Source: Lepidodermella squamata
Lineage: Eukaryota > Animalia > Gastrotricha
Direction: 5' to 3'
DNA: 64,000 nucleotides
Assembly (NCBI GenBank): GCA_047495785.1
Contig: JBLDXI010000066.1
Span: 248,001 to 312,000, forward strand
Part shown: one piece after another, positions 1,098 to 44,074 of the stretch
Layout: each line of letters opens with the position of its first letter
Numbering within the stretch: position 1 is the first letter of the stretch
Made by a program: the position numbers and the translations under genes
Notes under the pieces: model-generated
What the model was told of the DNA's origin: nothing
The model's input: only the letters and a program-made list of their open reading frames with translations
Databases searched by the model: none

Positions 1098-4000
1098 TCA
1101 AGTGTGATAGACAGCTTTGCTAGCGAACGGGCGGAATGGCAGGTCTTTGAATAGATCTTCCGGCGATTCAGCAGGGTTCTTCGACGTGTTCTCAGCGTAC
1201 TGATGTTTATGGCCAGTGTGTTCGCTCTTTTTCTGCTTGTTCTTGCCATTTTTTGTGTTGTAATCACGCCGGTACATGTGGCTGTTGTGCGCCATCGGGT
1301 AGGACGGGTGGCATTTCGGGAAGTCCTTCGGCGGCTTGACCCACTCGTGAACCTCGCCGACCTTCAAAGTGATCATCATGCCTTCCTCCATGTGGGCGTC
1401 GATGTGGCAGTGAAGCATCCACGGGCCGGGGTTGTAGGCCTTGAATCGAATGATGGCAAAGCCACCGGTCGGTAGAGCGATAACGTCCTTAAAATAAACA
1501 AAAATACGTCATTAATTAAAATATAAAATATTCAAATTAATAAAAATAAATTATCGAAAATTCAAAATATTGTGAAATTGAATTTAGGAAAATTAAAAAA
1601 TTAAATGATGACAAAGCCTAACCTTCTGTGGAGGTCGGTCGAAATTTCGCTTGATTAATCCTTTGCGCGACAGATCTTTGAACTGCGAGGAGTTGAAACC
1701 AGCTTTGACGTGATCCTTTGAAAATAATAACCGAATGATAAAGGGACGATTTTTCTAGAATCTCGAATTTCCCCAGAACATTTATTATTTTTCGACAGTA
1801 AAATTACCGAAAAAACCCGAAAACCCCGAATTCGGTAATTTTCGGTATTTTCCCAATAATTGCTCATTTTTTCGGGATTTTTCAATTATACCGATCAAAA
1901 GCAAAATTTTCCGACCCTTTTCAACTAGCCCATCAAGGATTTTACCCTTCATAATAGCCTACCATAGCGAGGACGTAGAAGTGGAAACCGTGAAGATGAA
2001 TCGGATGTGTAGCATCGACACCGAACGACGCGGATTTATCGATGAGGACAATTTCGACAAGCGAGTTAAGAGGAATGTCCTCAACGTGGATGCATTCGCA
2101 GTACTCTTCACGCGGGCATTTGCGGTTGTTGGCATTGCAGAACAGCTCAGGCGGAATCTCGTCCCATTGGCTATTTAAAGAAAAATAAGTTGAAATATTA
2201 AAAAATGTCAGACTGAAAATTTTATTGGGATGAAAAATCCACATAGAAAGTTTCGAAAAATTGTGAATATCACGAAAAATCTGCCAGAAAGTTTACCGAA
2301 TTCAATAATTGGGAAAATTCGATAATTCTACAGTTACTGATTGATCGAGCAATCAGGGTGATTTTCGAAGATTTAATGAGGGAAATAACTCACGTGAGCA
2401 TAGTTACAGGTGACATCATGTTGCTGATACCGTTCATGCGAGGCGTGACGAACCGGAAAATGTTCGCATACTTCTCAATGTCTTTAGCCGGCACACCCTT
2501 CGGCTTCAAGCGCGGATCCTCAACCATCTCAAAGTCCTGAAAAAATTGGTAATCAAAAAATGGACATCAAATATTTAAATTTCAATTTCAATTAAATTTT
2601 GAAATTTTGAAAATTAATTAAAAAATTAAAAGAACCAAAATTATCAACTCACAATTTCGACGATCAACTTCACATCAGGTTTTCCCATAATTTCCTCGAT
2701 TTCTTCGTCCTGTTTGAGGCTCCTCAGGTCGGAGATCTTAGCGCCAAGAGGCGGGTTCGGGCCCTGGTACTTGCTGAAAATTAGATAATTAACCTCCTCG
2801 TAAAGCAGTGAAGTCGCGCCATTCGTCGCCTGTTTAGGCGTTTTAATCGCCGGCAGCTCGTTGTTTTTATAGAACACCTTGCCAAAAGTAGTACCCTGCG
2901 TGAAAAACGTCGACAGCGCTCTGACTTCAATTAGAAAATAATTGCCAATCCGAGGCTTCTCGCATCCGACAAAGTAAGGCACGAAATCGAACCGTTCAGC
3001 CGGCATCATGTGGAACGATTTAGTCGCGACTGGTTTAATTGGCCGGCCATCGATGTTGACAATGACGAAATGGTGACACTGCATCGAAACAGCGATCGGT
3101 GTGAAGAAGAACGCGTTGTGGATGATCCTGAATCGATACCGATGGTGCGCCTTTAAATAGTACTCGAAGGCCGGGAGTTTGAATGGAATCGGCGGCAGTA
3201 GCACCTCGCCGGGTTTCTCCACGGCTTCCAGGGATGGTAGAATGCCGTTGAAGAGTAGATTAGCCGGGCTTCCGAATTCGATGGTGAACTGGGTCATGGC
3301 GAACCGGTTGAGGGCGGTGTCGGTGGGCAGCCAGTCTTGAATCATGATTGGGCGCAAATTGTCGCGGTCGTAGAGTTTGCGTTGCGGGTCTTTAGCCTGG
3401 CGGACGATGAAGGAACCGGCGACGCCATCGGCCCGTTGGAAGCCCATGTGCGAGTGATACCACCACGTGCCGGGCAGGTCGGCCGGGAAGTCGTAGGTGA
3501 AGTTCTCCATGGCCATAATTGGGCATTGAGCCACCATAGGCGCGCCATCCATCCAAGGCTAACAATTTTAAATTAAGGAAGAAATTTAAATTAATTACAC
3601 TCAATTTTGAATCATAATTGACGAATAAATCGTTATTTGATTAAACGGTATCAATTTTCGAAGCAGAATTAGCAGAATTGTTCAAATTTTTTCCAAAATT
3701 TTATGAAAATTTTCGAATTTTATGAAAATTTTCGAATCTTATGAAAATTTTTTGAAAAATGGATTTCACTTCCGGTCGAATTTGTTGAAAAACCTTTTCA
3801 ATTTTTTTCAATTTATTTGAAATTGGATTAACCAGTTTGACCAAATTTGAAAGCCATTTTTCAATTATTTTTCAAAATCCTGTAATTGCAGAAGAAAATA
3901 AAAAATTTAAAAAATTGTTGAAACAATTATGTGTGATAATATAGAGAAATTAGGATTGCCAATTTGAAGAAAACTAATTTGCACCTAAGTTATAACCAAC

Positions 4001-4855
4001 CACTCTATAAGGAGAATAAATGTCCCAAAATTAAAGTAAGGTGAGAACATTTTATGAAATCAAACAATGATAAATTAACTTCAATTTTTTACTGATCAGA
4101 GAAGATTTTAAGCGCAAATTCTCAACGTTGAAAATTGGAATTTTAAAATCAATCCATCTTAATTAAAATGTATTAGCACTAAACAACTAATTTAAGGAAG
4201 AATTTTAGGGTTACGGAATTTTTCAAGTTTAAAGAAGTTATAGGATAATTAATACCGTATCTCGCTGATGGAGGCCATGCCAGTGGATGCCGATCGATTC
4301 GCCGTTGGTCAGGCCGTTGATGACCTTGATACGAACTCGATCGCCCAGACAAACCTCAACGGACGGCCCAGGCATTTGAAGGTTGACAACCATGATCATG
4401 CGCCGGGTGCCGGCCGCCGGGATGCACCCTGGGGTTCGGCAGTCCTCGAACGAGTTCGGGCAGTTCATGCACTGGCGGCTCATCGAGGCGTACATGCCGA
4501 CGTGGAACTCGTAGTCGCAGACCATTGGCTTGCCGTGGGGTTCGCACTGCCGCCGGCACGGGTGGTTCGAGTAGTCGTGGTAGGGCGACAGCGAGTGGCG
4601 GCCCATCGGACTTCCGCTGTGGCCATCATGACCGCTGTGGTAGTGCATAGGTTTTTGATGGAAAAATCGCGGATCTTTCTCGTAGAAGCCATGCGAAAGG
4701 CCGATCAAAGTCAAAGCAAGAAAAGCTGAGACAAAAAATAAAAATAAAAGTTAATTCATCGATAAATAAATAATAATTTCAATTATTTAAATAAAATATT
4801 TTTTTTCAGAAATATTAGCTTGTAATAAAATTGACTAACCTGCTAGCGCTGCCAT
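1098..4855 (-). CDS. Secreted laccase-like multicopper oxidase 1 (7 exons, about 741 aa)
   Basis: Exons 4855-4840, 4725-4256, 3558-2653, 2536-2394, 2170-1963, 1715-1623, 1487-1098; all GT-AG and in frame. Signal peptide MAALAAFLALTLIGLSHG, Cys-rich N-terminal region, Cu motifs HWHG, WWYHSH, HPIHLHG, HCHIDAHMEEGM (Met axial ligand). Confidence 0.93.
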
Positions 4856-6011: not shown

Positions 6012-9000
6012 CTAATAAAGATGGACCGCCTTGAGCGAAAACGGGCGGAATGGGAAGTCTTCGATCAAATCCTTGAACGATTTGTTCTTTGAATAACCGC
6101 CCTTACCGCCGCGGTGATGTCCGCCATGCTGGCCGCTCTCCTCATCATCGCCGCTGTACTCCTGCCGCTTCTCATCCTCATAGGTATCACCCTCGCCATC
6201 ATCCTCATCCGTGTACTTGCTAGCCTTCTTACCGCCATCGTACTTCTTACTCTTGCCTTCGTTCGCTTCGCGGCGGTACATGTGGCTGTTGTGCGCCTTC
6301 GGGTAGGACGGGTGGCACATTGGGAAGTCCTTGGGTGGCTTGACCCACTCGTGAACCTCGCCGACCTTCAGCGTCACCATCATGCCCTCCTCCATGTGGG
6401 CATCAATGTGACAGTGGAGCATCCACGGGCCAGGGTTGTAAGCTCGGAATCGAATAATTGTGTAGCCACCGGTTGGCAGAGCGATAACATCCTTAAAAAT
6501 TAGTTAAATTTGAAAATAAATTCAATTAAAATTCAATTAAAATTGAAATTAAAAATTGAGAAATTTGAATTTTTAATTTTTTTTAAATTTTTTCGGAACT
6601 CACCTTAAGAGGAGGATTGTTGAAGTTACGCTTGACCTTGCCCTTCTTCGACAGGCGTTTGAAATCGGTGGCATTGAAACCTGGCTTGACTCGTTCCTGG
6701 GTGATAAAAAAACACGCAAAATTAATTAAAAATTTCAAATTTTCATCTTGTTTATATTTTACCTGGGCGAGAACGTTGAAGTGGAAACCGTGGAGATGGA
6801 TCGGGTGGTTGACATCAACTCCGCGGGCCTGGGCCTTGTCGATGAGAACGATTTCGACCAGCGAATTGAGAGGAATGTCCTCAACGTGGATGCACTCGCA
6901 GTACTCTTCACGCGGGCACTTGCGGTTCTTGGCATTGCAGAACAGCTCAGGTGGAATCTCGTCCCATTGGCTGAAAAAACCAATTTAGATTAATAAAACC
7001 AGAAAAATCCAGAAAAAATTGACGGGAAAATTGGAGGACAATTCTGAAAAAATGCTTAATTTTTCATGATTTTCCCGAAATTTGAGAAAATTTCTGAAAA
7101 ATCTAAAAAACCAGTAATTGCTAGGAAAAATAGAATGTAGGTCAACTAACGTGAGCATGGCGACAGGTGACATCATGTTACTGATTCCATTCATGCGAGG
7201 CGTGACGAAGCGGAAAAATTGCGAATATTTTTCGAGTTCCTTCTTGCTGGTAACATGCTTAGGCTTCAGACGCGGATCTTCGACAGTATCGAAATTCTAA
7301 AATAAAATGAAAAAATTCAAATTATTATTCGAAAATGATGCGTTTTGAAATTTCATAATTTAGAAAATTTTTGAAATTTTTGAAAATTGAATAATCATAA
7401 TTTTTCTTAATTAGGTCAAGACCTTCTTAAATTGCATAATAAATTTTAATTGTTTTGAAATTCAAAAGTATTAATTGAATAAATCAACGTACGATTTCAA
7501 TGATGAGCTTGACATCAGGCTTGCCTTCGATGTCCTTGTTGCGATGCAGGCTCCTCAAATCGGCAATCTTGGCGCCAAGCGGCGGATTCTTGACCTCGTA
7601 CTTGCTGATAATTAGGTAATTGACCTCCTCATACGTGTCATCCATCGCGCCATCAGTCGCCTCGTACGCGCTCGTAATTTCGGGCAACTCGTCGTTTTTA
7701 TAGAAAATCTTGGCAAACGCCTGACCGCCATCGCCGCGAGTACCCAACACCTGGGCCTTGAGCAGGAAAAAGTCGTCAGTCTGCGGCCGTTCACACCCGA
7801 CGTAGTACGGGATGAAATCGACGCGTTCCGCCGCCAACATGTGGAACGATTTAGTCGCGACTGGCTTGATCGGCCGGCCGTCGATGTTGATGATGACGAA
7901 ATGGTGGCAAGTCATCGAAATAGCGATGGGGGTTGCGAAAAACGCGTTGTGGATTTGACGGAATCGGTACCGGTATTTCGCGTTCAAATGGTACTCGAAG
8001 GCGGGCAGTTTAACCGGGAAGGGCGGGATGGAGGCATTGACGTTTTTGTTCTCAGCCGCGTCTATATCGGCTAAAATTCCGTTAAAGAGGAGCGACGAGC
8101 CTGTTCCGCGGTTTCCGGTGAACTGGGCCATGGCGAATCGGTTGAGGGCGGTGTCGAGCGGGAACCAGTCTTGCGTCATCATCGGGCGAATGTTGTCGCG
8201 GTCGTACAGGTGTTTCAGCGGGTCGTTGGCCTGGCGGATGATGAAGGGACCAGCGATGCCGTCGGCGCGTTGGAAGCCCATGTGCGAGTGCCACCACCAC
8301 GTTCCAGCGATATCGGCCGGGAAGTCGTAGGTGAAGTTCTCCATGGCCATAATCGGGCATTGGGACACCATGGGGGTGCCATCCATAAAAGGCTGAAAAA
8401 AATTACCAATTATTTATGGATTTAAAAAAAAATAAGCAAAACGTGAGATATTTATGCACGAAATCTTGTTTTTTTAAGAATGTGATTTTTTCATAATGTT
8501 ACAATGGAACAACTATCGATTATCGATTATCGATTATCAATTATTAGTGATTTTTTTTATGTGATTTTGTGAAATATTCGCATCACGCTAACATGATTAG
8601 ACGATTTTATATCGATTATTGATTATCGAATATGATAATGAAAAATCAATCGTTTTCCATTATTTACATTATTTCCATTATTTATTGCATAAACTTGATA
8701 TAATTTTAGCCTCATTTGCATATTCATACCTAAATGTAATACTGAAAAATTTCCCAAAATTTGTTAAAATTCCGATGTCTAGATGGGCTATTCGGGTTAC
8801 CCTAATTATTTCAACTGTTTAGAAAATTCCAGAAATTTCGAATTTTAATTTTCGAACAATTTAAATTCAAATTTTCAAACACTTTTCTCGCGATATTGCG
8901 AGGCCTTGTTTTCATAATTTTTGCCAAATTTTTTACCGTTTCAAACTGATGAAGACCGTGCCAGTGGATGCCGATCGATTCGCCGTTGGTCAGGCCGTTG

Positions 9001-9539
9001 ATGACCTTGACTCGAACGCGATCGCCCAAGCAGACCTCGATCGATGGGCCAGGCATTTGCAGGTTGACAGTCATAATCATGCGCTGGGTACCAGCCGCCG
9101 GGACGCAGCCCGGGGTTCGGCAGTCCTCGAACGAATTCGGGCACTTCTGGCACTGGCGGCTCATCGAGGCGTACATGCCAACGTGGAACTCGTAGTCGCA
9201 GATCATGGGCTTGCCGTGGGGTTCGCAGTGGCGCCGACACGGGTGGTTCGAGTAGTCGTGGTAGGGCGACAGCGAGTGGCGGCCCATCGGGCTGTTGTGC
9301 TGCTTCTTGCTGCCGTGGTAGTGGATCGAGTCAAGGTAGAAAAATCGCGGGTCATTGTGGTACCAGTGATCGCCGGCCAGGGTGGCCTCAGCGAAGCACA
9401 AAACCAGGATAGCTAAAAATATTAAAAATTTCAACAATTATTGAAAAAATTATTGGAAAATTAATACGAAATTAACCAATTTTACAATAATTTTGAGGGG
9501 CTAAGAGACATCGGATGGCTCACCTAGCGATAACTGCAT
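6012..9539 (-). CDS. Secreted laccase-like multicopper oxidase 2 (7 exons, about 772 aa)
   Basis: Exons 9539-9524, 9412-8937, 8392-7493, 7296-7151, 6970-6763, 6696-6604, 6491-6012; same intron positions as copy 1. Motifs HWHG, WWWHSH, HPIHLHG, HCHIDAHMEEGM. Long acidic, Gly/Lys/Tyr/His-rich C-terminal tail. Confidence 0.93.
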
Positions 9540-11863: not shown

Positions 11864-12154
11864 GATGCAATTTTCGACATTTTCAACGGTGAAGTCGAAT
11901 TTTTGGAATTTTTTTTCTGTCGACATCCTTTAGCCGATAATAAAACGCTTTGATCAGAGTCAAAATTCTTTCTATTCACATGTTACCTGTGCATTTATTT
12001 GTATAGAGATAAACCGTATTATCGAATACTTCCTGATCACAGAAATAATTCAACTTCATATAATATCATAATTTCATAGAATAATCAATATAATTTAACC
12101 ACAGCATTTGCATGAATTAGGTCAAGTAGTGATGATAATAATGATGAGCATTTA

Positions 12155-15100
12155 TTACTCGCTCTCGCTCTTCGAGTAGGTCTTCTTTTTGAGCAGCTTC
12201 TTGAGCGATTTTTTGCCCTGCTCATCCGAGTGGTCGCGCAGATTCTCGCTCACACTCTCGTTCTCCGTCGTGTCGCTGTAGCTGCTCTCGTCATCCGACT
12301 GGCGGCGGCGGCTCTTGTCGCCCCGCCGGCGGTACTTGTTCTTCCTAGCCCTCGCGCTGTTGTAGTCGGCATCGTCGACCTGAAGCGAGGCGAGCGAGCC
12401 GTAGCATCGCGGGAAGTTGCGCGGCGGTTTCAGCCACTCTTTCGTCTCGCCGACCTTGAGCACCATCATCATACCCTCCTCCGTGTGGTAGTCGATATTG
12501 CAGTGCAGCATCCACGGGCCAGGGTTGTTGGCTACAAAGCGAATGACAACGTAGCCGCCAGATGGAACTCCGACAACGTCCTAGAAATTTATTCAGAAAA
12601 ATCAAAATTAATCGTCAAAAATTGAAAAAATTAATATCAAAATGTTGTGTTAAAATTTGAAAAATTGTCAGCTAAATTTTCATAAAAATATGACATTTAA
12701 TTTTCAATTTTTAATTTTTTTATTTTGTCCTGATTAATCTTTGATATCGAAAAAATCACCGATTTTCAAAATCAATAATCGATATTTGGAATCGATATCG
12801 GCTTTGAAAATTTAAAATTTGAGATTTTGAAAATCCTAATTGCGAAAACTTTAATGCTGAAACTTGAATTTAATGCTGGAACCCTATATTACCCTATAAT
12901 ATATTACTTTACCTTGAGAGGAGCTTTGTGAAGGGTTCGCTTGATCAAATCTTGCTTGTCCATCAACTCGAATTCCGTCGCATTGAATGGCTTCTTGACC
13001 GAATCCTATATTTTTTTAATTCAAATTAAATAAAAATTAAATATTTTTCGCTTGATTTGTCAATTTTACCATGGCAACAACGCGGAAGTGGTAGCCTTGC
13101 AAGTGGATAGGGTGATCGATTTCGTTGCGTGTCTTGCGCCCGTTGTCGATCAAGACGAGTTCGACAAGGGAGCCGAGCGGGATTTCCTCGACGTGAATGC
13201 ACTGGCAGTACTCTTCGGCCGGGCAGTGGCGCTTCTTCGAGTTGCAGAACAAATCCTTCGGAATTTCGTTATATTGGCTGAAAATTTCAAAAATTGAGAA
13301 AAGTTCAAAAATTTAGAGAAGCCACTTACGTGAGCATGTTAACTGGCGGCAATTTGCTGCTGATTCTGTTCAGCCTAGGAACGAGGACCCGATGGAAGGT
13401 ACCGTTAGTCTGAGACGTGTTGTTTTGCGGGTTCGATGCGCTAACTTTAACGGCATCGAAATCCTGGAATTTAGAAAACTTCGTGATTTGAAAAATAAAA
13501 AAAAACTGAAATTTCAAAAATATAAAATTAATTTGTTGAAAATGAGAGAAATTCATAAAATTTTAGAGTTAAAATTTCTAGTCTATTTTCAGACTTTTAA
13601 AATTTTGAATATAAATTTATTGAAATTTCAAAATTTAGAAATAGCAATTTTTTATTTTTTTTCGGAGTGAAGATTGAAATTGTTACCATTTCGATGATGA
13701 GTTTAACATCGGGTTTACCCGATACAACCGGGTCGGTGTAGGCGCTCTTCAGCTCCGAAACTTTGGCCACCTTCTTCGCAGCCGGTTTCGTCTCATTAAC
13801 ATCAACGCGGTACTTGGAATACAAGACATAGTTGAGCTTATCCAACACGTCGCGGCTGTAGCCATCAGTCGCTTCCTTCACGTCGATAATTTTCGGCAAC
13901 TCACCATTTTTATAGGTAATTTTTGCAAAAGCAAAACCGCCGCGATTCTCGCCGCGTTGATCAACGACTTGAACGTTGAGGTGGAAAATTTTCTCCTCAG
14001 GATTTTCCGCGCCAACGAAGAACGGCACGATGTCGAAGCGTTCGCTCGGCAGCAGGATGACGGACTTCGCCGCGATGGGTTGAACAGGCCGGCCGTCGGC
14101 TGCGATGACGACCAAATCGTGGCCGGTGATCCAGACCTTGACCGGGGTTAGGAAGGCAGCGTTGTTAATCACCCTGAACCGGTAGCGGTATTTCGCCTTT
14201 AATTGATACTCAACTGGCGGCAATTTGAGCGCGGCGGTTTTTGACCTACTCTCAGACAACGAATGGGCGCCAGTCTCATTCGAGGGTGAAACGCCGTTGA
14301 CGAGCAGCGTGGCGGGTGATGTGCGGCCATGCGTGAATTGCGTCATAATAGCCGTGTTCAGGGCTGTGTCGCTGGCGAACCAGTCTTGGATGAAGATGGG
14401 CCGGATGTTGTCGCGGTCGTACAGAGCTTCGTGAGGGTCGTTAGCCTGGCGGACGATGAAGGGACCAGCGAGGCCGTCGGCCCGCTGGGAACCCATGGCC
14501 GCGTGCCAGAAGTAGGTGCCGGTCTGATCGGCCAAAAAGTCGTACGTGAAGTTGTCGCCGGACATTATTGGGCACTGCGAGATCATTGGCGCGCCATTCA
14601 TGAAAGGCTGAATAAAGAAAAATCGATTAAATTCAATCTTGTAATTTAAAATATTTTAAAATTCGAAATTGGAGAATTTTATTATTATCAAAATATTTTT
14701 CGAGAGACGAGAGAAAGTTTAAATTTTTTTCAATTTTTTTTTAATTTTAAAAATTTAAAAATATCAAACAATTCAAATTTTCAATATTTTCAATCGCCTA
14801 GTTAATTCGAAAAATCACTTTAAATTATTTTAAATTTGTTCAAAATTTGCAAAATTTTAAATTTCAAATTTCAAAACTTTTCAAAAAATTGCGACTCACA
14901 GTTTTTGACATGTGAAGGCCGTGAATGTGAATGCTGGTCGATTCGCCATTGGGCAGGCCATTGATGACCTTGATGCGAACGCGATCTCCGCGGCAGACTT
15001 CAACCGACGGGCCCGGCATCATGCGATTGACCGCCATAACCGGGCGCTGGGTGCCGGCCGCCGGGATGCACCCAGGCGCCTGGCAGTCCTCGGCCGAGTA

Positions 15101-15503
15101 CGGGCAGTTTTTGCAGAATCGGCTCATCGAAACAAACATGCTGATGTGGAAGTCGTAGTCGCACGTTTTTGGCCGCTCGTCATGTTCACAGTGGCGGCGG
15201 CACGGGTGGTCGTAGTAGTCTTGGTAGACGGTGTTGGCTGGCCCGAAAAGGCCCTCGTGGCCCTGCTGAGGGTGACCGGAGCCGTGGTGAAAAAATCGAG
15301 GATCCTGCTCTTCAACCGAAGTCGTACTGATCGCTGTACGGATATTAAAATTGAGAAATTAAAATTAAAATTGAAAATAATTGAACTGGATGAAATATTT
15401 TGAAAAATTTTCGAATTTTCTTTTGAATCTAAGAAGAGCGAGCGTACTGAAAAATCAAATTACCTGTAAAACAGAGAGCCAACAGCAAATAAGCTGTTGT
15501 CAT
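12155..15503 (-). CDS. Secreted laccase-like protein 3 lacking three type-3 Cu histidines (7 exons, about 751 aa)
   Basis: Exons 15503-15464, 15333-14900, 14607-13687, 13463-13330, 13277-13070, 13005-12913, 12580-12155; intact frame and splice sites. Motifs read HIHG, YFWHAA (normally HSH), HPIHLQG (normally HLHG) and HCNIDYHTEEGM (normally HCH). Confidence 0.9.
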
Positions 15504-15824
15504 TTTGGAAAAGGTTGAAGAACTTGTTACTCAATGAATAAATTGTAAAAATTGAACAAAAGTTTCTTCGAAGGCGTTTCGAAATTTTATTTAAGGTCGC
15601 GCGAATCGTAGCCACGTGTTGAAAGGTGCCACGCGCCCCCGAAATTTTCGCGCCCATTGTTCTTAATTTTTTTGATCGTGAAACAGCTCTTTTCATGTCA
15701 AAATTGTCGCATTTCATCATCATGTTTTATTAGTTCCTCTCACAAAATAATAATTAAATTTTATTTTAATTAATAAATAAATTCAACCAGTAGTTATCTC
15801 ACAGTATTTTCGATTTTTCGAATA

Positions 15825-18800
15825 TTACAGCGTGAAAGCATTCGGGAATCCGTCGAATTCCGGATCCAAATCAGCTCTCAGGCCCATTTGCAGCAGGTTC
15901 CGATGGCCTCCACCGCCATGGTGCATGCTTCGTTGATTTCGCTTGTAAATATGCTTGTTATGCTTCATCGGCCATGACGGGTGGCATTTCGGGAAGTCAT
16001 GCGGTGCCTTGACCCACTCGTGGGGATCGCCGACCTTCAGCGTCAACATCATGCCCTCTTCCATGTGGAAATCGATATGGCAGTGAAGCATCCACGGGCC
16101 GGGGTTGTCGGCAATAAATCGAATAACGGCATAGCCACCTGAGGGTACACCGATCACATCCTAGAAAAACAATTTCAAATTTTTCAGAATTTTTTGAAAT
16201 TTTGAAAAATAAATAGGCATACCTTTAGAGGAGCATTTTTCACATTTCGCTCAACCAATCCTTTGCGGTCCATTCGATAGAACTCTTTAGCGGTAAAATT
16301 GGCATGAACTTTTTCCTAAAATAGAAAAAATTTCAAAATTAAGTAAAATTTAATTTTTAAAATTGTTGAAAAAATTTCAAAATTTTTAATTTCCAAAAAC
16401 TGACCATAGCAACGACTCGGAATTGGTAGCCATGCATGTGGATTGGGTGATTGACATCGGTTCTGACAATTTTGGCATTATCAAGCAGGACAATCTCGAC
16501 CAGGGCTCCAAGTGGGACTTCTTCAAGGTGGATACACTCGCAGTACTCCTCAGGTGGACATTTTCGATGCTTCGCATTGCAAAACAGCTCCTTCGGAATT
16601 TCATCAAAATCGCTGTAAACAAAATTTCGAAAATAGTTTTTGAAAATTATAAAATAACAAATTACGTTAGCATGGTGTATGGCGGCATCATGTTGCTGAT
16701 TTTGTTCAACCGGGGTGTGACAAATTTGAAAAATTGCTCGTATTTAGCCAACTCTTCTGGTGGGACATGTTTCGGCTTCAAACTAGGATCGATAACGGTC
16801 TCGAGATCCTAAAAATGAAAGAGAAAAGGCAATTCACGAAAACCACGAAAATAGCAATCGAATTTTCGATTTTTAATTCAATTCAAAAATTTAACTTCAA
16901 TTTTCAAATTTTTCAAGGTCAAATCAAAATTTCAAATTTGAATAAAATTATTTGACAATTCTCAAAATTTCAAAATTTCAAATTTTAATAATTTTCGAAA
17001 TTTTTTGAGAATTTTTTTTCAATTTTTACTCTTTATACAAACTAACCAGTTCAACCATGAGGCGATAGTCTGGCTTGCCCGAAACATCCGGGTCGCGATC
17101 GATACTCTCCAAATCAGCGATTTTCGCACCCTTCGACCTCACGCCAGGTTCGTCATTCAAATACTTGGCATAGATCAAATAATTGACCTCGTCATAAACA
17201 AACGACGTCGCCCCACCCGTCGCTTGTTTCGCAGTTAAAACCGGCGGAATTCGCCCGTCTTCATAGATAACCTTAGCGAAGGTCAACCCACCAGTCGCAT
17301 TGCCACGAGCGTCCAAAATTTGAACGAATAGGTTGTAGACACCGTCCCTTGATCGTTTCTCGCCATTGAAATACGGCACGAAATCGAAACGTTCAGCCGG
17401 CATCATGTGGAATGATTTAGTAGCGGTTGGCTTTATCGATTGGCCGTCGATTGCGATGAGGATCAAATCGTGGCCCTCGAGCCATACCTTAACCGGAGTT
17501 GCGAAGAACGCGTTATGAATCACCCTGAATCGATACCGGTGTTTCGCGTTCAAGCGATACTCAAATGCGGGTAGCTTCACCGGGAACGGCGGCAGGGTCG
17601 TATTTCCGCGGTTTTCTTTCGCGTCAAGTGACCCGGATATGCCGTTGATTAGCAAATTAGCCGGGGCTGATCGAACGCTTGTGAATTGAATGATTGCGAA
17701 CCGGTTGATTGTTGTATCGAGTGGGAACCAGTCAGAGGTCATGAGGGGCGCCAAATTGTCGCGGTTGTACAGCCGGTAGTGAGGGTCTTTCGGGTCTCGG
17801 ATGACGAAAGCGCCTGCGATTCCGTCGGCGCGTTGAAATCCAGTATGGCTGTGCCAAAAATAAGTACCTAGTCAAGTAATTTATTATTTGGATATATTTG
17901 TTGGGTTTTTGTTTAGGAAATTCACCTGGGATTTCAGCTTCAAAGTCGTAGGTGAAATTTTCGCCGGGCATGATGCCACACTGAGAGAACATCGGAGCAC
18001 CATCCATGAAAGGCTAGGTGAAAGATGGCAAATTGAAAATAAATTAAATGTTGAGTACAAAGAGTAAATTATTAATAAATTATGAATATATTCAATGAAT
18101 CATTTATTAAGGATTTTCAAAATATTTTTTTCAAAAAAATTAAAACAAATTTAGGCACTGGGCCGAATGAAAATCCCCCTGATGATTGTATAATATTCTT
18201 CCTAAATTGAATTTGATTTATTTTTGAAATTCGTTAGATATACCACAGCTCTTACGCTATGATCAAAATTGAATTGATTGTATTTGAAATTGGCTCACCA
18301 CCACAGCGTAACAGAAATAACCAAAGTGCAACACAAAATTTAATATTTTGCAGCACACATTTTTGCAACACACGACCTTGTTTTTGGCATTAGTGAAACA
18401 AGTAAAATTCAGGCATACCAATAGATGTTATCGGGGGCGCGGAATACGACCGTGGTAATTGTTTGAATGTCAGGGACGTTGGTACCGGGTAAACCGGGTG
18501 AAAACCGGGTAAAACCGGGTACTACCCGGGTAAAAATTGAAAATCGTCCCTTTCGGTTATCATATTCGGATTGAGCGTAAAAAACTGCCCCTATCCTATA
18601 TCTTCTTGTTATATCGAACTTACAAGTTACAAAAATAAGTTATGTGTTGCAATTTTATCCTGCTGCAAATTGGTGTTTTGTGTTGCGCTGTGGTTTTAAG
18701 TGTTTGTTTGAAATTTTGTATTCAAAACGACCCCACATTTATGGCATAAACTTATACACATTCACGGATGCAAATGTTCGCAGGTTTTTGGTAAAATTCC

Positions 18801-19933
18801 AAGGGATGTGTTTAATTTAATTTTTGGATTTATTTCTCATTTTTCTATAATCAATATCGATTCTTAGTATCGATTTTACACTGATTTTTCCGATGTCAGC
18901 AGTCTAGGAATTTGAAAAACATTCTACATAAGTATCTGCGAGGGTTATAATTGCCGATAGAAGATTTCGAGGTCACACGATCATCAGTATCGATCAGAAA
19001 AGGAAAAGGTCTAAATTACAAAAAATAAAAAAATGAAGTCCAGCCTAAATTTTAGTGGTACTTCATATTTAGTCTTTAGACCCTTCTCAACTCCCATTTT
19101 TAGTTTCATTTTGTGTAGTAATTTTCCCAATGTGAATTTTTGGTTTGTTTGAATGGGAAGAATTTCAAATTTCGCTAGATAAGAATAAAATCTGCATGCT
19201 CAGGAATAAACGTCGGAATTCGGATCATCGTTTTATCGATTCGATGTCGTAATTAAATTGAAAAATGAAGTTCATACTAATTTTAATTTTAATTTTCCAA
19301 AGAAATTTCGCTTAATAAAGGTAATTGTTGGATCTCATACCGTTTTACGCTGCGGCATGCCGTGCCAGTGAATCGAAGTTGTCTCGCCATTAGTCAGCAA
19401 ATTGACGACTTTTACGCGAACCCTATCACCCAAGCAGACTTCAACCGCCGGGCCAGGCATCTGCCGGTTAACAACCAACACCGCGCGTTGAGTCCCAGCG
19501 CCAGGGATGCAACCCGGCTGTTGGCAGTCGGCGAACGTATTCGGGCACGAGAAACACTGCCGGCTCATGGTTGCGTACAAGGCGATGTGAAACTCGTAGT
19601 CGCAAACCATGGGCTTGGCGCCAAGCTCGCAATTACGCCGGCACGGGTGGTTCGAGTAGTCGTGATAGATAGACAGCGAATGCCGGCCCATCGAGTGATG
19701 ATGGTGACCTCGTTTTTTATTGCTAGACGTGCGCCGTGGCTCGACGTGTTCTGGGTTCATGTGTGCCATTGTGAATTTATAAAAACGCAGGTCATCGTAG
19801 CGGCTAGCCGACGAGGTCGCTATCAATAAAATTGCCGCTATCGAACACGCTGGAAAAAAATTCAACAATTAAATCACAATTTTTGACGTAGAAATTAATT
19901 CTTACCGGCCAATGAAATTGCTGATAAATTCAT
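15825..19933 (-). CDS. Secreted laccase-like multicopper oxidase 4 (8 exons, about 741 aa)
   Basis: Exons 19933-19906, 19849-19341, 18013-17926, 17867-17047, 16808-16666, 16612-16405, 16315-16223, 16160-15825. Motifs HWHG, YFWHSH, HPIHMHG, HCHIDFHMEEGM. Has an extra 58-nt intron at 17925-17868. Confidence 0.92.
18300..18694. mobile_element. MITE-like inverted-repeat element inside laccase-4 intron 2
   Basis: The left arm ACCACAGCGTAACAGAAA...TTTGCAGCA...TTGCAACACA (18300-18372) is an imperfect inverted copy of TGTGTTGCAA...TGCTGCAAA...TTGTGTTGCGCTGTGGT (18643-18694). Internal CCGGGTAAA repeats at about 18485-18535. Confidence 0.5.
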
Positions 19934-40503: not shown

Positions 40504-43500
40504 TCAGTAATAGGAATCGCGGTAATGACGATTTCGTCGTTTGTGCGCCGATTTCCGACCGCCGCGGTGATGTTTCCGCTTCATTCCATCAACGTATTTC
40601 AGCCATGACGGGTAACGGCTCTTCGATCGTTTCGATGATCGCCTATTCTCAAAACTTTCATCCGACGGCGACTCGTTTTCGATGCGATGCGATTTTTTAT
40701 GGCGATTATTTTTATTAGGATGTTCAGATTTCTTGAAAGAAAGTTCGTACTCGGGAGCTTCCCATGACGGCGAGCAGGTCGGAAAGTTCGGAGGAGGCGG
40801 CGGCAAATCACTCTGCTCACCAACTCGCAGAACCATAGCCATTCCGAGTTCCTATTACATTTGTTTCATAATTTCATAAAAAATAATATTTTAGAGCGCA
40901 TTATGGAAATTTTAAGATGGATTCAAGAAATTTGAATTTTTAATTTTCAAACACAAATTTTTTAAAAATTTCAATTTTTCGAATCAAGTTTAAATACTTT
41001 TTTAAATCTTAAATTTCCAATTTTTCAATTTTCAAATTGAAATTTAAAAAAAGAATTCCAATTATTTCCAACTTGATTCAAGAAAGTTTAATTTTGAAAT
41101 TTTGAATTGAAAGTTTTTGGAATTTTGAAATTTCAACAAAAAAATTGATTTCTTTCTAAATAAAATTACCATGTGAAAATCGATATGGCAATGAAGAAGC
41201 CACGGCCCTGGGTTGTTAGCTCGGAATCGAACGATGACGTAGCCGCCAGTTGGCACGCCAATGACATCTTTCAACGGCGCGTTCTTCAAGTTCCGCTTGA
41301 TTAAACCCTGCTGGTCGTAATCCAGCACCTCTTCACCGGTTAGATTCAAATGAATTTTATTCATCGCCACAACGCGGAAGGCGTAGCCATGGATGTGCAT
41401 TGGATGGTTCAGGTCGTGGACGTTGTCTGAAAATCCATTGTCAACCATGACCAGTTCAACGAGAGCGCCGAGTGGAATTTGTTCCAGGTGAATGCACTCG
41501 CAAAAGTCTTGCGGTTTGCATTTGCGATGCCGCGAGTTGCATAGCAGGTCTTTAGGCACGTCCTGCCATTGCGAGAGAAGCGGCACGGGCGGCATCATGT
41601 TCGTGATTTTGTTGATTCTAGGCGTTATGAACGTGTGCGGGAAATTGTCGGAAATGTACGGAGCATTTTCGCGCACAATGTTGATCGGCCGGAGGCGAGG
41701 ATCTTTAACTTTCTCGAAATCCTAAAAAAACGAAAAAAATGAGAAAAAATCCTTAGATAGATTAGGCGATAGAGCGGAAAGCGGACAGCGATTTCAGAAA
41801 TTTCAAAAATTTGGAAAAATACATAAAATTTTGTGAATTTTCAACAAAACTTCAAAAAATTAAAAAATTGTTAGAAAAATTTGGATAGGAAAATCTGGGT
41901 CTTTTAGAAGTTAATTTAAGAACTAATTAAAAATTTTAAAAATTTAAAAATTTCGAAGGTTGGAAGGTTTGAAAGTTCCAATATTTATTCCCTTACAAAT
42001 TGAACCAAAAGCTGAACATCAGGTTCGCCTTCAACGTTGTTCGGATGATTGTCCAGTGATCGAAGTTGCGAAATTTTCTTCGCATTTTTCCCATCATCTA
42101 AAAAAATTACAGAAAAATTAATAAATCAATATTTTAACAAAATTACGATTATGAGGGTATTTCGACCATTCCCAATAGTTGACCTCATCCAGGACTTGTT
42201 TAGTAGCTCCTCGACTAGCCTGCCACGCCGTGCTCGGTTTCGGACTCTTCCGGCCGTGGTAGATGATCTTCGCAAAGGCCTTGGCAGTTTCAATATCCAC
42301 CGAATCGCCCAAAGCCTGGGCCATTATGTAGTAGATGCCATGCATCGATTTGAGTTCGCCACTGAAAAACGGCACTACGTCGACACGCTCGGCTGGCATT
42401 AGCGTGACGGTCTTCGTCACGACTGGTTTAATCGCATGGCCGTCGAAGGCGAGGATGACGAGGTAGTGACCAGTGAAGCGGAACTTGATTGGCGTGTTCC
42501 AGAACGCGTTGTTGATGATGCGGAACCGGTAGCGTAGTTTAGGGTGAAGGCAGTAGACGTCGGAGGGAATTGCGACTGGGAAGTCGGGCAGGGTCATGTT
42601 GCTTGACCCGGTCACGCCGTGACTCGGCCAGCGACCGTTCAGGAGCACCTGGGGTGGTCGGAAGCCGGCATTTCCGAAATGGAAGGTGGCAAATCGATTG
42701 ATGGCCAATTCCTCGGGAAACCAATCCTGTAAGTTCGAATAATTTTCCAATAAATTATAAATTGAAAATATTGAAAAATTAATAAACTTAATATGTAAAA
42801 ATTGGAAAATTGGAATCAATGGAATTTAAAATTAAAAAAATTCAAAATTCGATGAAATTAAAATTCCGATTATTTTTCCAATTTTTAAATTTGAATTTTG
42901 AATTTTTTAAATTTTAAATTTCATTGATTTCTCAATTTTTAAATTCAAATTTTATTAATTTTTCAATATTTTCAAATTTCAGAATTCTCAGAATTCTTCA
43001 ACTTTTTTCTCAAATATTTTTTTTCCAACCTGAGTCATCAGTGGGCGTAAGTTGTCTCGGTCATACAGCTTCTTGTGAGGATCCTTTGGGTCGCGGATGA
43101 TCAGAGGCCCAGCGAGGCCATCGGCTCGTTGCACGCCAGTGTGAGAGTGCCAAAAGTACGTCCCAGTTTGGTCGGCTTCGAAATCGTACGTGAACGACTG
43201 GCCTGAATTTATGGGACACTGCGAATACATCGATGCTCCATCCATGTATGGATTTTTCTAAAAAAAAAATAAAAAAATTGTGATTCACCATCCGGGGATC
43301 CTAAAAGATTAGAAAATATTTTTTTCAGAATTTTGAAAATTCTTTAATTTTAAATTTTTTTTAATTTTAAATTTTAAATTTAACTTAAATTCTGAACCAA
43401 TTACAATTTCTAATTCAATTCAATAAATGATGCCGACTTTGGAAATATTTTGTTCGAACTACTTTGTGCGAAAAAATCAACATTGAAAAAAATTCAATTA

Positions 43501-44074
43501 ATTTTCAAAAAATTGAAAAAGTCTCCTTAAAATTAAAATTTAATTTCAATATGAAATTTTACTTTTTGGAAAAGCCCATGCCAGTGGATGCCTGTCGACT
43601 CGCCGTTCTGCATCATATTTTCGACAGTGACTCGAATCCGGTCACCCAGACACACTTCAATTGACGGACCCGGTAGAACCCGATTCGCAGTTAGAATGGC
43701 TCGCTGGGTGCCGCTGCCTAGGTTACACCCAGGTCGTTCGCAATCGCCTAAATCGTTCGGGCAGTACATGCAAGCTCGGCCCATAGTCGTGTACCACGTC
43801 AGGTCGAGTTTGTACTCGCAAATCCGCGGCTGGTCGCCCGGCGTGCACTTGCGCCGACACGCATGATCGGCGAAATCATCGACCATGACCGGCATGCCCA
43901 TCATTGAGCCGTAATTGTGGCTAGCATCGTTGTTACGCCGGCTTTCTTTGTTATGGCCATGCCCAGCTGATGCTACTGCCAACCAGCAGCAGATTAATAG
44001 ACCTGGACATTTGAAAAAATAGAGCAAAGTTTAGCCGTGAATCACTTCCCAAACTGACCATCGAACTTCTTCAT
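40504..44074 (-). CDS. Secreted laccase-like multicopper oxidase 5 (7 exons, about 754 aa) with a distinct intron layout
   Basis: Exons 44074-44059, 44002-43563, 43257-43030, 42726-42147, 42097-41997, 41721-41170, 40851-40504; in frame. Motifs HWHG, YFWHSH, HPMHIHG, HCHIDFHM|ELGM. Basic C-terminal tail. Confidence 0.92.

Follow-up and report, generated by a model that had tools for sequence, protein, structure and literature searches.

The third of five laccase-type genes

The 64,000-nucleotide (nt) stretch of Lepidodermella squamata DNA analyzed here (the window) contains five intact genes for laccase-type multicopper oxidases (MCOs), all located on the minus strand. The third of them, referred to below as the target, is an expressed gene in which ligands of the trinuclear copper cluster have been replaced. 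Its neighbors are designated paralogues A, B, D, and E. The target gene runs from position 15503 to position 12155 and consists of seven exons with 2,256 nt, corresponding to 751 codons with no internal stop. All six introns have GT..AG ends; they are 52 to 332 nt long with 14 to 27% G+C, and the exons have 55% G+C. An earlier note, made from the letters of the sequence, had described the gene as free of stops and frameshifts and as retaining six intact introns, and this gene model bears it out.

A Pfam search of the exon translations detected the domains Cu-oxidase_3, Cu-oxidase, and Cu-oxidase_2 in this order, all above the gathering score (E values of 1e-7 to 1e-17). By domain order and tree placement, the target is assigned to the three-domain MCO superfamily. 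At the N-terminus (MTTAYLLLALCFTAIS), the mean hydropathy over 11 residues reaches 2.46. This hydrophobic segment resembles a signal peptide, and one is predicted, with a mature protein of about residues 17 to 751. The earlier note had listed the signal peptide as present; the hydrophobic segment was confirmed, and the signal peptide itself has the standing of a prediction. The same applies to exon 1 and intron 1, which lie outside all transcript contigs shown. The N-terminus is followed by a Cys-rich HPCRRHC...CDYDF region, which is typical of animal laccase-type MCOs, and the protein ends in a tail of 81 residues rich in Ser, Lys, Arg, and Asp.

The gene model was compared with a DNA contig (X1) and with contigs of two runs from separate studies, X2 (2015, labeled organism B) and X3 (2014, labeled organism A), whose RNA nature was deduced from their spliced contigs. 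Table 1 lists the exons of the target with the supporting contigs, followed by the paralogues.

Table 1. Exons of the target gene and positions of the four paralogues in the window (UTR, untranslated region; L1 to L4, copper-binding motifs)
Feature	Coordinates	Strand	Content and support
Exon 1	15464..15503	-	Start codon and hydrophobic, signal-peptide-like N-terminus (MTTAYLLLALCFT); predicted from gene model and hydropathy
Exon 2	14900..15333	-	Cys-rich HPCRRHC...CDYDF, first half of cupredoxin domain 1, L1 (14929-14918); X2 spliced contig over 14900-15169, joined to 14607
Exon 3	13687..14607	-	Remainder of domain 1 and domain 2; Asn162 (14598-14596), L2 H193-A194-A195 (14505-14497)
Exon 4	13330..13463	-	Linker of domains 2 and 3; joints 13462/13686 and 13277/13330 in X2 and X3
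Exon 5	13070..13277	-	L3 (13114-13094); Gln570 codon CAA (13099-13097); spliced contigs
Exon 6	12913..13005	-	Joints 13004/13069 and 12579/12912
Exon 7	12155..12580	-	L4 (12505-12470), Asn638 codon AAT (12499-12497), tail, stop; X3 record 19 covers 12159-12579 with one difference (12312)
3' UTR	11975..12154	-	AATAAA at 11999-11994; poly(A) junction at 11975 (X3 loose end, 22 T before 11975 on the plus strand)
Paralogue A	1098..4690 (about)	-	Canonical copper motifs; N-terminal exon unmodelled; 51% identity to target
Paralogue B	6012..9374	-	Canonical copper motifs; 50% identity to target, 73% to A
Paralogue D	15825..19805	-	Adjoining upstream gene; canonical motifs; 50% identity to target
Paralogue E	40504..43964	-	Canonical motifs; diverges most among the copies, with introns at other positions; 43% identity to target

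The AT-rich introns of the target contain short high-copy repeats at 12655-12805 (intron 6) and 14717-14762 (intron 2), where the word depth of the DNA contig reaches 882 against a background of 44; both places were skipped as repeats in the contig comparison.

Copper ligands and the cluster shell

We read the copper-binding motifs of the target against those of paralogues A, B, D, and E. For L1, the paralogues have HWHG and the target has H149-I150-H151-G; for L2, HSH corresponds to W-H193-A194-A195 (WHAAM) in the target; for L3, HPxHxHG corresponds to H565-P-I-H568-L-Q570-G; and for L4, HCHxxxH-x4-M corresponds to H636-C637-N638-IDY-H642-TEEG-M647. All replacements that the earlier note had named, HSH to HAA, HLHG to HLQG, and HCH to HCN in three exons (3, 5, and 7), plus HWH to HIH, were recovered in this comparison.

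The affected residues were assigned to copper sites by means of the ligands of Fet3p, in which H413, C484, and H489 bind the type 1 (T1) copper, H81 and H416 the type 2 (T2) copper, H128, H418, and H483 one type 3 (T3) copper, and H83, H126, and H485 the other T3 copper (PMC4203857). Ala195 and Gln570 of the target are the equivalents of H128 and H418, both ligands of one T3 copper, and Asn638 is the equivalent of H485, a ligand of the second. This leaves one T3 copper with one of its three His ligands and the other with two of three. The T1 set (H565, C637, H642, and axial M647) and the T2 His pair (H149 and H568) are complete. The proposal that the lost His are T3 ligands, two on one copper and one on the other, with the T1 ligands and both T2 His remaining, therefore holds on the Fet3p list. 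In total, the target carries 7 of the 10 ligand His, including 5 of the 8 that belong to the trinuclear cluster. It lacks the full complement of 10 His and one Cys by which a competent laccase binds four coppers and has a complete T1 set (His, Cys, His, and axial Met, Leu, or Phe). The His-to-Ala change at position 195 requires two base changes and is flanked by a Ser-to-Ala change; both features are more in keeping with an old loss than with a recent one.

The lost-His codons are not assembly errors. Contig X1 covers 11900-16056 with zero differences from the window. The HAA codons are covered by RNA contig X2 record 15 and the HCN codons by X3 record 19, with no listed change in either. The HLQG motif in exon 5 is also covered by X3 record 19, for which eight of nine differences are listed, none of them in codon 570. 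Reads showing His codons had been named in advance as a refutation; where the lost positions are covered and listed, the contigs show none.

Next to the ligands, a second-sphere residue is altered. We aligned the five window copies with 158 retrieved animal MCO relatives and read ligand states column by column. In the (M)DG motif that follows L1, the second-sphere residue is Asp in 160 of 160 other sequences compared, and only the target has Asn (Asn162). In an alignment with solved structures from PDB, Asn162 coincides with chain residue 77, the Asp in the (M)DG motif of laccases. The position corresponds to D94 of Fet3p, D112 of CueO, and D116 of CotA, and the target thus lacks the second-sphere Asp of a competent laccase. 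In Fet3p and CueO, replacement of this Asp by Ala or Asn drastically lowers activity (PMC2944330). Because D162N adds to the lost T3 His, the trinuclear cluster is altered in its second shell as well as in its first. At residues 243-245, NRFA is changed to NTAI, a stretch that may line a cluster channel.

We then considered all alignment positions with a conservation of at least 90% in 162 relatives. The target deviates at 5 of these 54 positions. Four changes are found only in the target (W150I, D162N, H195A, and H570Q), and all of them are located within the shell of the trinuclear cluster; the fifth, Cys to Thr at position 312, is common to all five window copies. The H638N column fell below the 90% cut owing to fragmentary rows and is hence outside the 54. 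Private changes at these positions are absent from paralogues A, B, D, and E. Cluster-shell positions were changed in 4 of 8 cases versus 0 of 45 for the other positions (Fisher p = 2.4e-4). The target retains the remaining near-invariant fold positions, among them the conserved cysteines in its Cys-rich region. The losses are confined to the copper cluster and not scattered over the protein.

Among the 158 relatives, two other ligand-deficient patterns recur, both of which differ from that of the target. In P0028, P0030, P0119, and P0130, ESQ or ESR replaces His-Cys-His, a pattern that may be similar to that of insect MCORP (see below). In P0008, P0097, P0098, P0120, P0149, P0157, and P0158, L1 has H-x-R instead of H-x-H.

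Expression, constraint, and origin

The target is an intact gene with spliced and polyadenylated transcripts, and purifying selection acts on it. Contigs of X2 and X3 are located exclusively on the exons, and their joints coincide exactly with introns 2, 3, 4, 5, and 6, whose ends read CT..AC on the plus strand. The loose end of X3 lies 19 nt downstream of the AATAAA signal and represents a poly(A) end. Expression was the first check that the earlier note had called for, and spliced, polyadenylated transcript contigs from two studies answer it positively.

Transcript contigs and window differ at 28 listed coding positions, of which 21 are synonymous and 7 non-synonymous. With 22% synonymous sites, this corresponds to a pN/pS of approximately 0.1 (binomial p = 3.9e-9). 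The copper-motif codons are free of all listed differences, and the X2 contig, which is 1.9% divergent, has HAA, MNG, and HIHG unchanged. In comparisons of the target with the paralogues, the ratio of non-synonymous to synonymous divergence (dN/dS, or omega) is 0.26 to 0.33 at dS values of 1.3 to 2.0; these are pairwise Nei-Gojobori estimates with dS near saturation, which show only that omega is well below 1. The target has accordingly stayed an open reading frame under constraint for a long time. An omega near 1, the outcome expected by the earlier note for a young pseudogene, was not obtained. The terminal branch of the target is longer than that of D (0.57 vs. 0.23), and Tajima's test against D is significant (100:61, p = 0.002); against A (79:79) and B (85:79), it is not. 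The rate change is a modest acceleration and not free decay.

Two observations concern the transcript contigs as such. In exons 4 and 5 (13069-13462), they differ by 4 to 5% from the window, and in exon 7 by only 0.2%; both forms have about equal depth in X2. This points to a pair of diverged haplotypes or to near-identical copies, both of which are expressed. Further, X2 covers most exons of the target, yet no X2 contig was found on the last exons of paralogue D (15826-16400). The target may be more strongly expressed than D in the X2 sample, with the reservation that contigs cannot rank expression.

In the tree, the target forms an inner clade with A, B, and D (100% support), and the five window genes together with four metagenome MCOs (P0001, P0002, P0012, and P0013) form a further clade, also with 100% support. 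These four, which come from metagenome contigs of small eukaryotes, are the nearest relatives. On their contigs, MCO genes occur singly, with L3 and L4 in canonical form, and neither a tandem array nor a degenerate copy was found there. A word-index search with exon 3 and an exhaustive HMMER search of 1.84 billion representative proteins yielded no relative above 40% identity to exon 3; the target and paralogues A, B, D, and E are themselves absent from the searched collections. A search with P0012, the closest full-length relative, retrieved insect, mollusc, and echinoderm laccase-like proteins (29 to 36% across most of P0012) and nothing closer; none of the relatives bore the name of a rotifer. 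The target shares 30 to 40% identity with laccase-like proteins of these groups, and approximately 30 to 36% with the named relatives (insect MCO1/laccase-1 type, mollusc, echinoderm). Because no relative exceeds 40% identity and the target groups with its own neighbors at 100% support, it is best classified by sequence as a lineage-specific tandem duplicate from a local expansion instead of being assigned to an old family like MCORP.

Some features of the array and of the metagenome relatives deserve mention. A and B separated recently (73% identity, dS 0.85). In D, the exon 3 equivalent is interrupted by an additional intron of 58 nt, and E has lost the introns between the equivalents of exons 4 to 7 and gained others. 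In P0012 (L001:675-2762), about 90 residues with many His, Met, and Glu (MEMEGG...HHDMK) are inserted directly before L3, an arrangement that recalls the Met-rich copper-binding inserts of bacterial CueO-type oxidases. Metagenome relatives (L002:7534-7722, P0013 C-terminus) end in hydrophobic tails that resemble glycosylphosphatidylinositol (GPI) anchors or transmembrane segments, and the five window copies end in long, charged, low-complexity tails.

Candidate function and relation to known systems

In MCOs, electrons enter at T1 and pass along the Cys-His pathway to the T3 pair, and O2 is reduced at the T2/T3 cluster (PMC4203857, PMC2944330). Because the two T3 positions of the target retain one and two His and the organizing Asp is gone, four-electron O2 reduction is very probably lost. 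The earlier note had expected this from the His replacements, and D162N strengthens the expectation. We propose, with a probability of about 0.6, that the target is a secreted, maintained blue-copper or binding "pseudo-laccase" in which substrate oxidation would be uncoupled from four-electron O2 reduction. Its origin would be a tandem duplication in this lineage that produced a copy of a secreted animal laccase-type MCO, the trinuclear cluster being dismantled afterwards. Most likely, the protein would still fold like its neighbors, with a T1 (blue) copper site and a substrate pocket; in place of oxygen turnover, its action would consist in binding (of copper, a substrate, or a partner) or in the exchange of single electrons. 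Possible roles are those of a single-electron acceptor or donor, a binder of substrate or copper, a limiter, a decoy, or a partner of the neighboring active copies. More tentatively, and with clearly less confidence, one might think of a natural three-domain laccase with T1 only (or with T1 plus a reshaped one- or two-copper site), selected to carry electrons as a secreted blue-copper protein or to act alongside the four neighboring laccases as a redox buffer or limiter.

Several points weigh against the proposal. The chance that 3 random hits among 11 ligands all fall in T3 is 0.12, and the chance that 5 hits all fall in the cluster shell is 0.13. At paralogue-conserved positions, the target has replaced 46 of 236 residues (19.5%), and at this rate, all four T1 ligands survive with a probability of 0.42 and T1 plus T2 ligands with a probability of 0.27. 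Chance alone could therefore account for the retention of T1 and T2, and specific sparing is unsupported; the argument of the earlier note that losses restricted to T3 suggest selection for a new role is likewise not supported. No orthologue with the same substitutions was found in a clearly different species in the searched protein collections (best, 40% identity), a check likewise suggested by the earlier note, so the search lends no support to long-term conservation of the substitutions. In addition, 14 variant rows of the transcript contigs are unlisted; if all are counted as non-synonymous, the synonymous excess still has p = 6.6e-5. Finally, side chains of Gln and Asn are able to coordinate copper, which leaves room for an altered cluster that binds fewer coppers or binds them in another way.

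The same survival probabilities are what an alternative without any copper chemistry would draw upon. The target could be a copper-independent scaffold or binding protein, comparable to MCORP, SKU5/SKS, and SufI/FtsP, in which the copper ligands are obsolete and those of T1 and T2 have merely not yet been replaced. There is precedent for such proteins: MCORP is essential although the recombinant protein is nearly copper-free and inactive as an oxidase (PMC4203857), and SKU5/SKS1, which have no T1 and T3 ligands, are proposed ferroxidase limiters (PMC10315306). However, T1 was the site lost first in MCORP and SKU5, the reverse of what is seen in the target: its set of four T1 ligands is complete, H636 and C637 of the His-Cys pathway are in place, neither T2 His is missing, and those near-invariant positions that have changed all belong to the shell of the trinuclear cluster. 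We consider this alternative unlikely.

It is still less probable that the target has remained an oxidase, with a smaller, reshaped site formed by the T2 His, H151, H193, H636, and perhaps Gln570 and Asn638. Such a site would hold one or two coppers and would reduce O2 partially (to peroxide or superoxide) or turn over another small molecule. The five remaining cluster His, the metal-coordinating capacity of the Gln and Asn replacements, and the expression of the gene under purifying selection are compatible with it. However, one T3 position is down to a single His, and the invariant Asp is also lost, the Asn mutant of which is nearly inactive in Fet3p and CueO (PMC2944330). Moreover, His to Gln and His to Asn are each one base change away, so the chemistry of these residues need not have been selected, and a natural precedent was not found in the literature searched. 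The last possibility, a decaying duplicate under relaxed selection (a young, still intact-looking pseudogene) or an artefact at the His codons, is largely refuted and very improbable. The longer branch of the target and the significant Tajima's test against D would agree with decay. However, the relative rate does not differ from those of A and B, the frame and all splice sites are intact despite a dS above 1.2 from every paralogue, spliced and polyadenylated RNA was found in two studies with synonymous variants in excess, and the other checked near-invariant positions are kept, barring the one change common to the paralogue group. As for an artefact, DNA and RNA contigs match the window at the codons covered. 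Thus, the pseudo-laccase with a retained T1 site is the interpretation that we favor.

The significance of the target lies in this combination. The ligand-deficient MCO relatives compared here (MCORP and SKU5/SKS) lost T1, whereas the target keeps T1 and the fold and loses the cluster together with the essential Asp. The four canonical paralogues alongside it offer a clean comparison (one genome, one family, 50% identity) for a laccase scaffold without O2 reduction, and the target illustrates how pseudoenzymes originate within tandem arrays. It is also a warning for annotation: the name "laccase" assigned by a domain search need not mean an oxidase. If true, the T1-only interpretation would make the target the mirror image of MCORP and SKU5 and a natural experiment on the MCO fold minus oxygen reduction.

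Among known systems, the closest by domain order, Cys-rich HPCRRxC...CxYxF region, and mostly identical intron positions are the active animal laccase-type MCOs, namely the insect MCO1/laccase-1 type and the canonical paralogues A, B, D, and E, the latter with 43 to 51% identity. The difference is that only the target has replacements of the HWHG Trp, of the invariant Asp, and of 3 of the 8 His in the trinuclear cluster. Copper nitrite reductase was also considered. It shares with the target a T1 site linked by Cys-His to a second copper position between cupredoxin domains. Its catalytic copper is bound by three His, and an acidic residue is required. However, it is a trimer of two-domain subunits, and the surviving ligands of the target do not make a three-His set. 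The suggestion of the earlier note that the target has a nitrite-reductase-like site finds no support, the conserved acidic residue beside T2 being itself lost.

Homologues with missing copper ligands are known from bacteria, plants, and insects. Bacterial SufI/FtsP are copper-ligand-deficient MCO relatives. The plant proteins SKU5/SKS and Bp10 (ascorbate-oxidase-like) resemble the target in being secreted MCO-fold proteins that have biological roles without a working copper set. For SKU5/SKS, limiting of a downstream ferroxidase was proposed (PMC10315306). They differ from the target in lacking the T1 and T3 ligands while keeping the T2 His, in being GPI-anchored, and in belonging to a plant lineage distant in sequence. 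Insect MCORP (PMC4203857; Peng et al. 2014) is likewise an animal three-domain MCO homologue minus copper ligands that is expressed and maintained, with loss of oxidase activity predicted and, for TcMCORP, shown. In MCORP, the T1 Cys is missing, as is the entire His-Cys-His triad, and what remains is mainly the T2 His pair; the protein contains almost no copper, is inactive, and is essential in Tribolium (PMC4203857). The target departs from this ligand pattern, since it keeps T1, T2, and half of T3, and has lost only the last His of the triad, with H636 and C637 kept. Furthermore, MCORP has a signal anchor and constitutes an old, insect-wide orthologue group, whereas the target is probably a lineage-specific tandem duplicate; in the tree, which held no sequence named MCORP, the target groups with its own neighbors and not with the ESQ-pattern sequences. 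A natural MCO that retains T1 and lacks the cluster was not found described in the literature searched, which also yielded nothing relevant on rotifer laccases. Functional MCO homologues with missing ligands are thus already known, and the pattern of the target, with T1 kept and the cluster lost, is the reverse of that of MCORP and SKU5/SKS.

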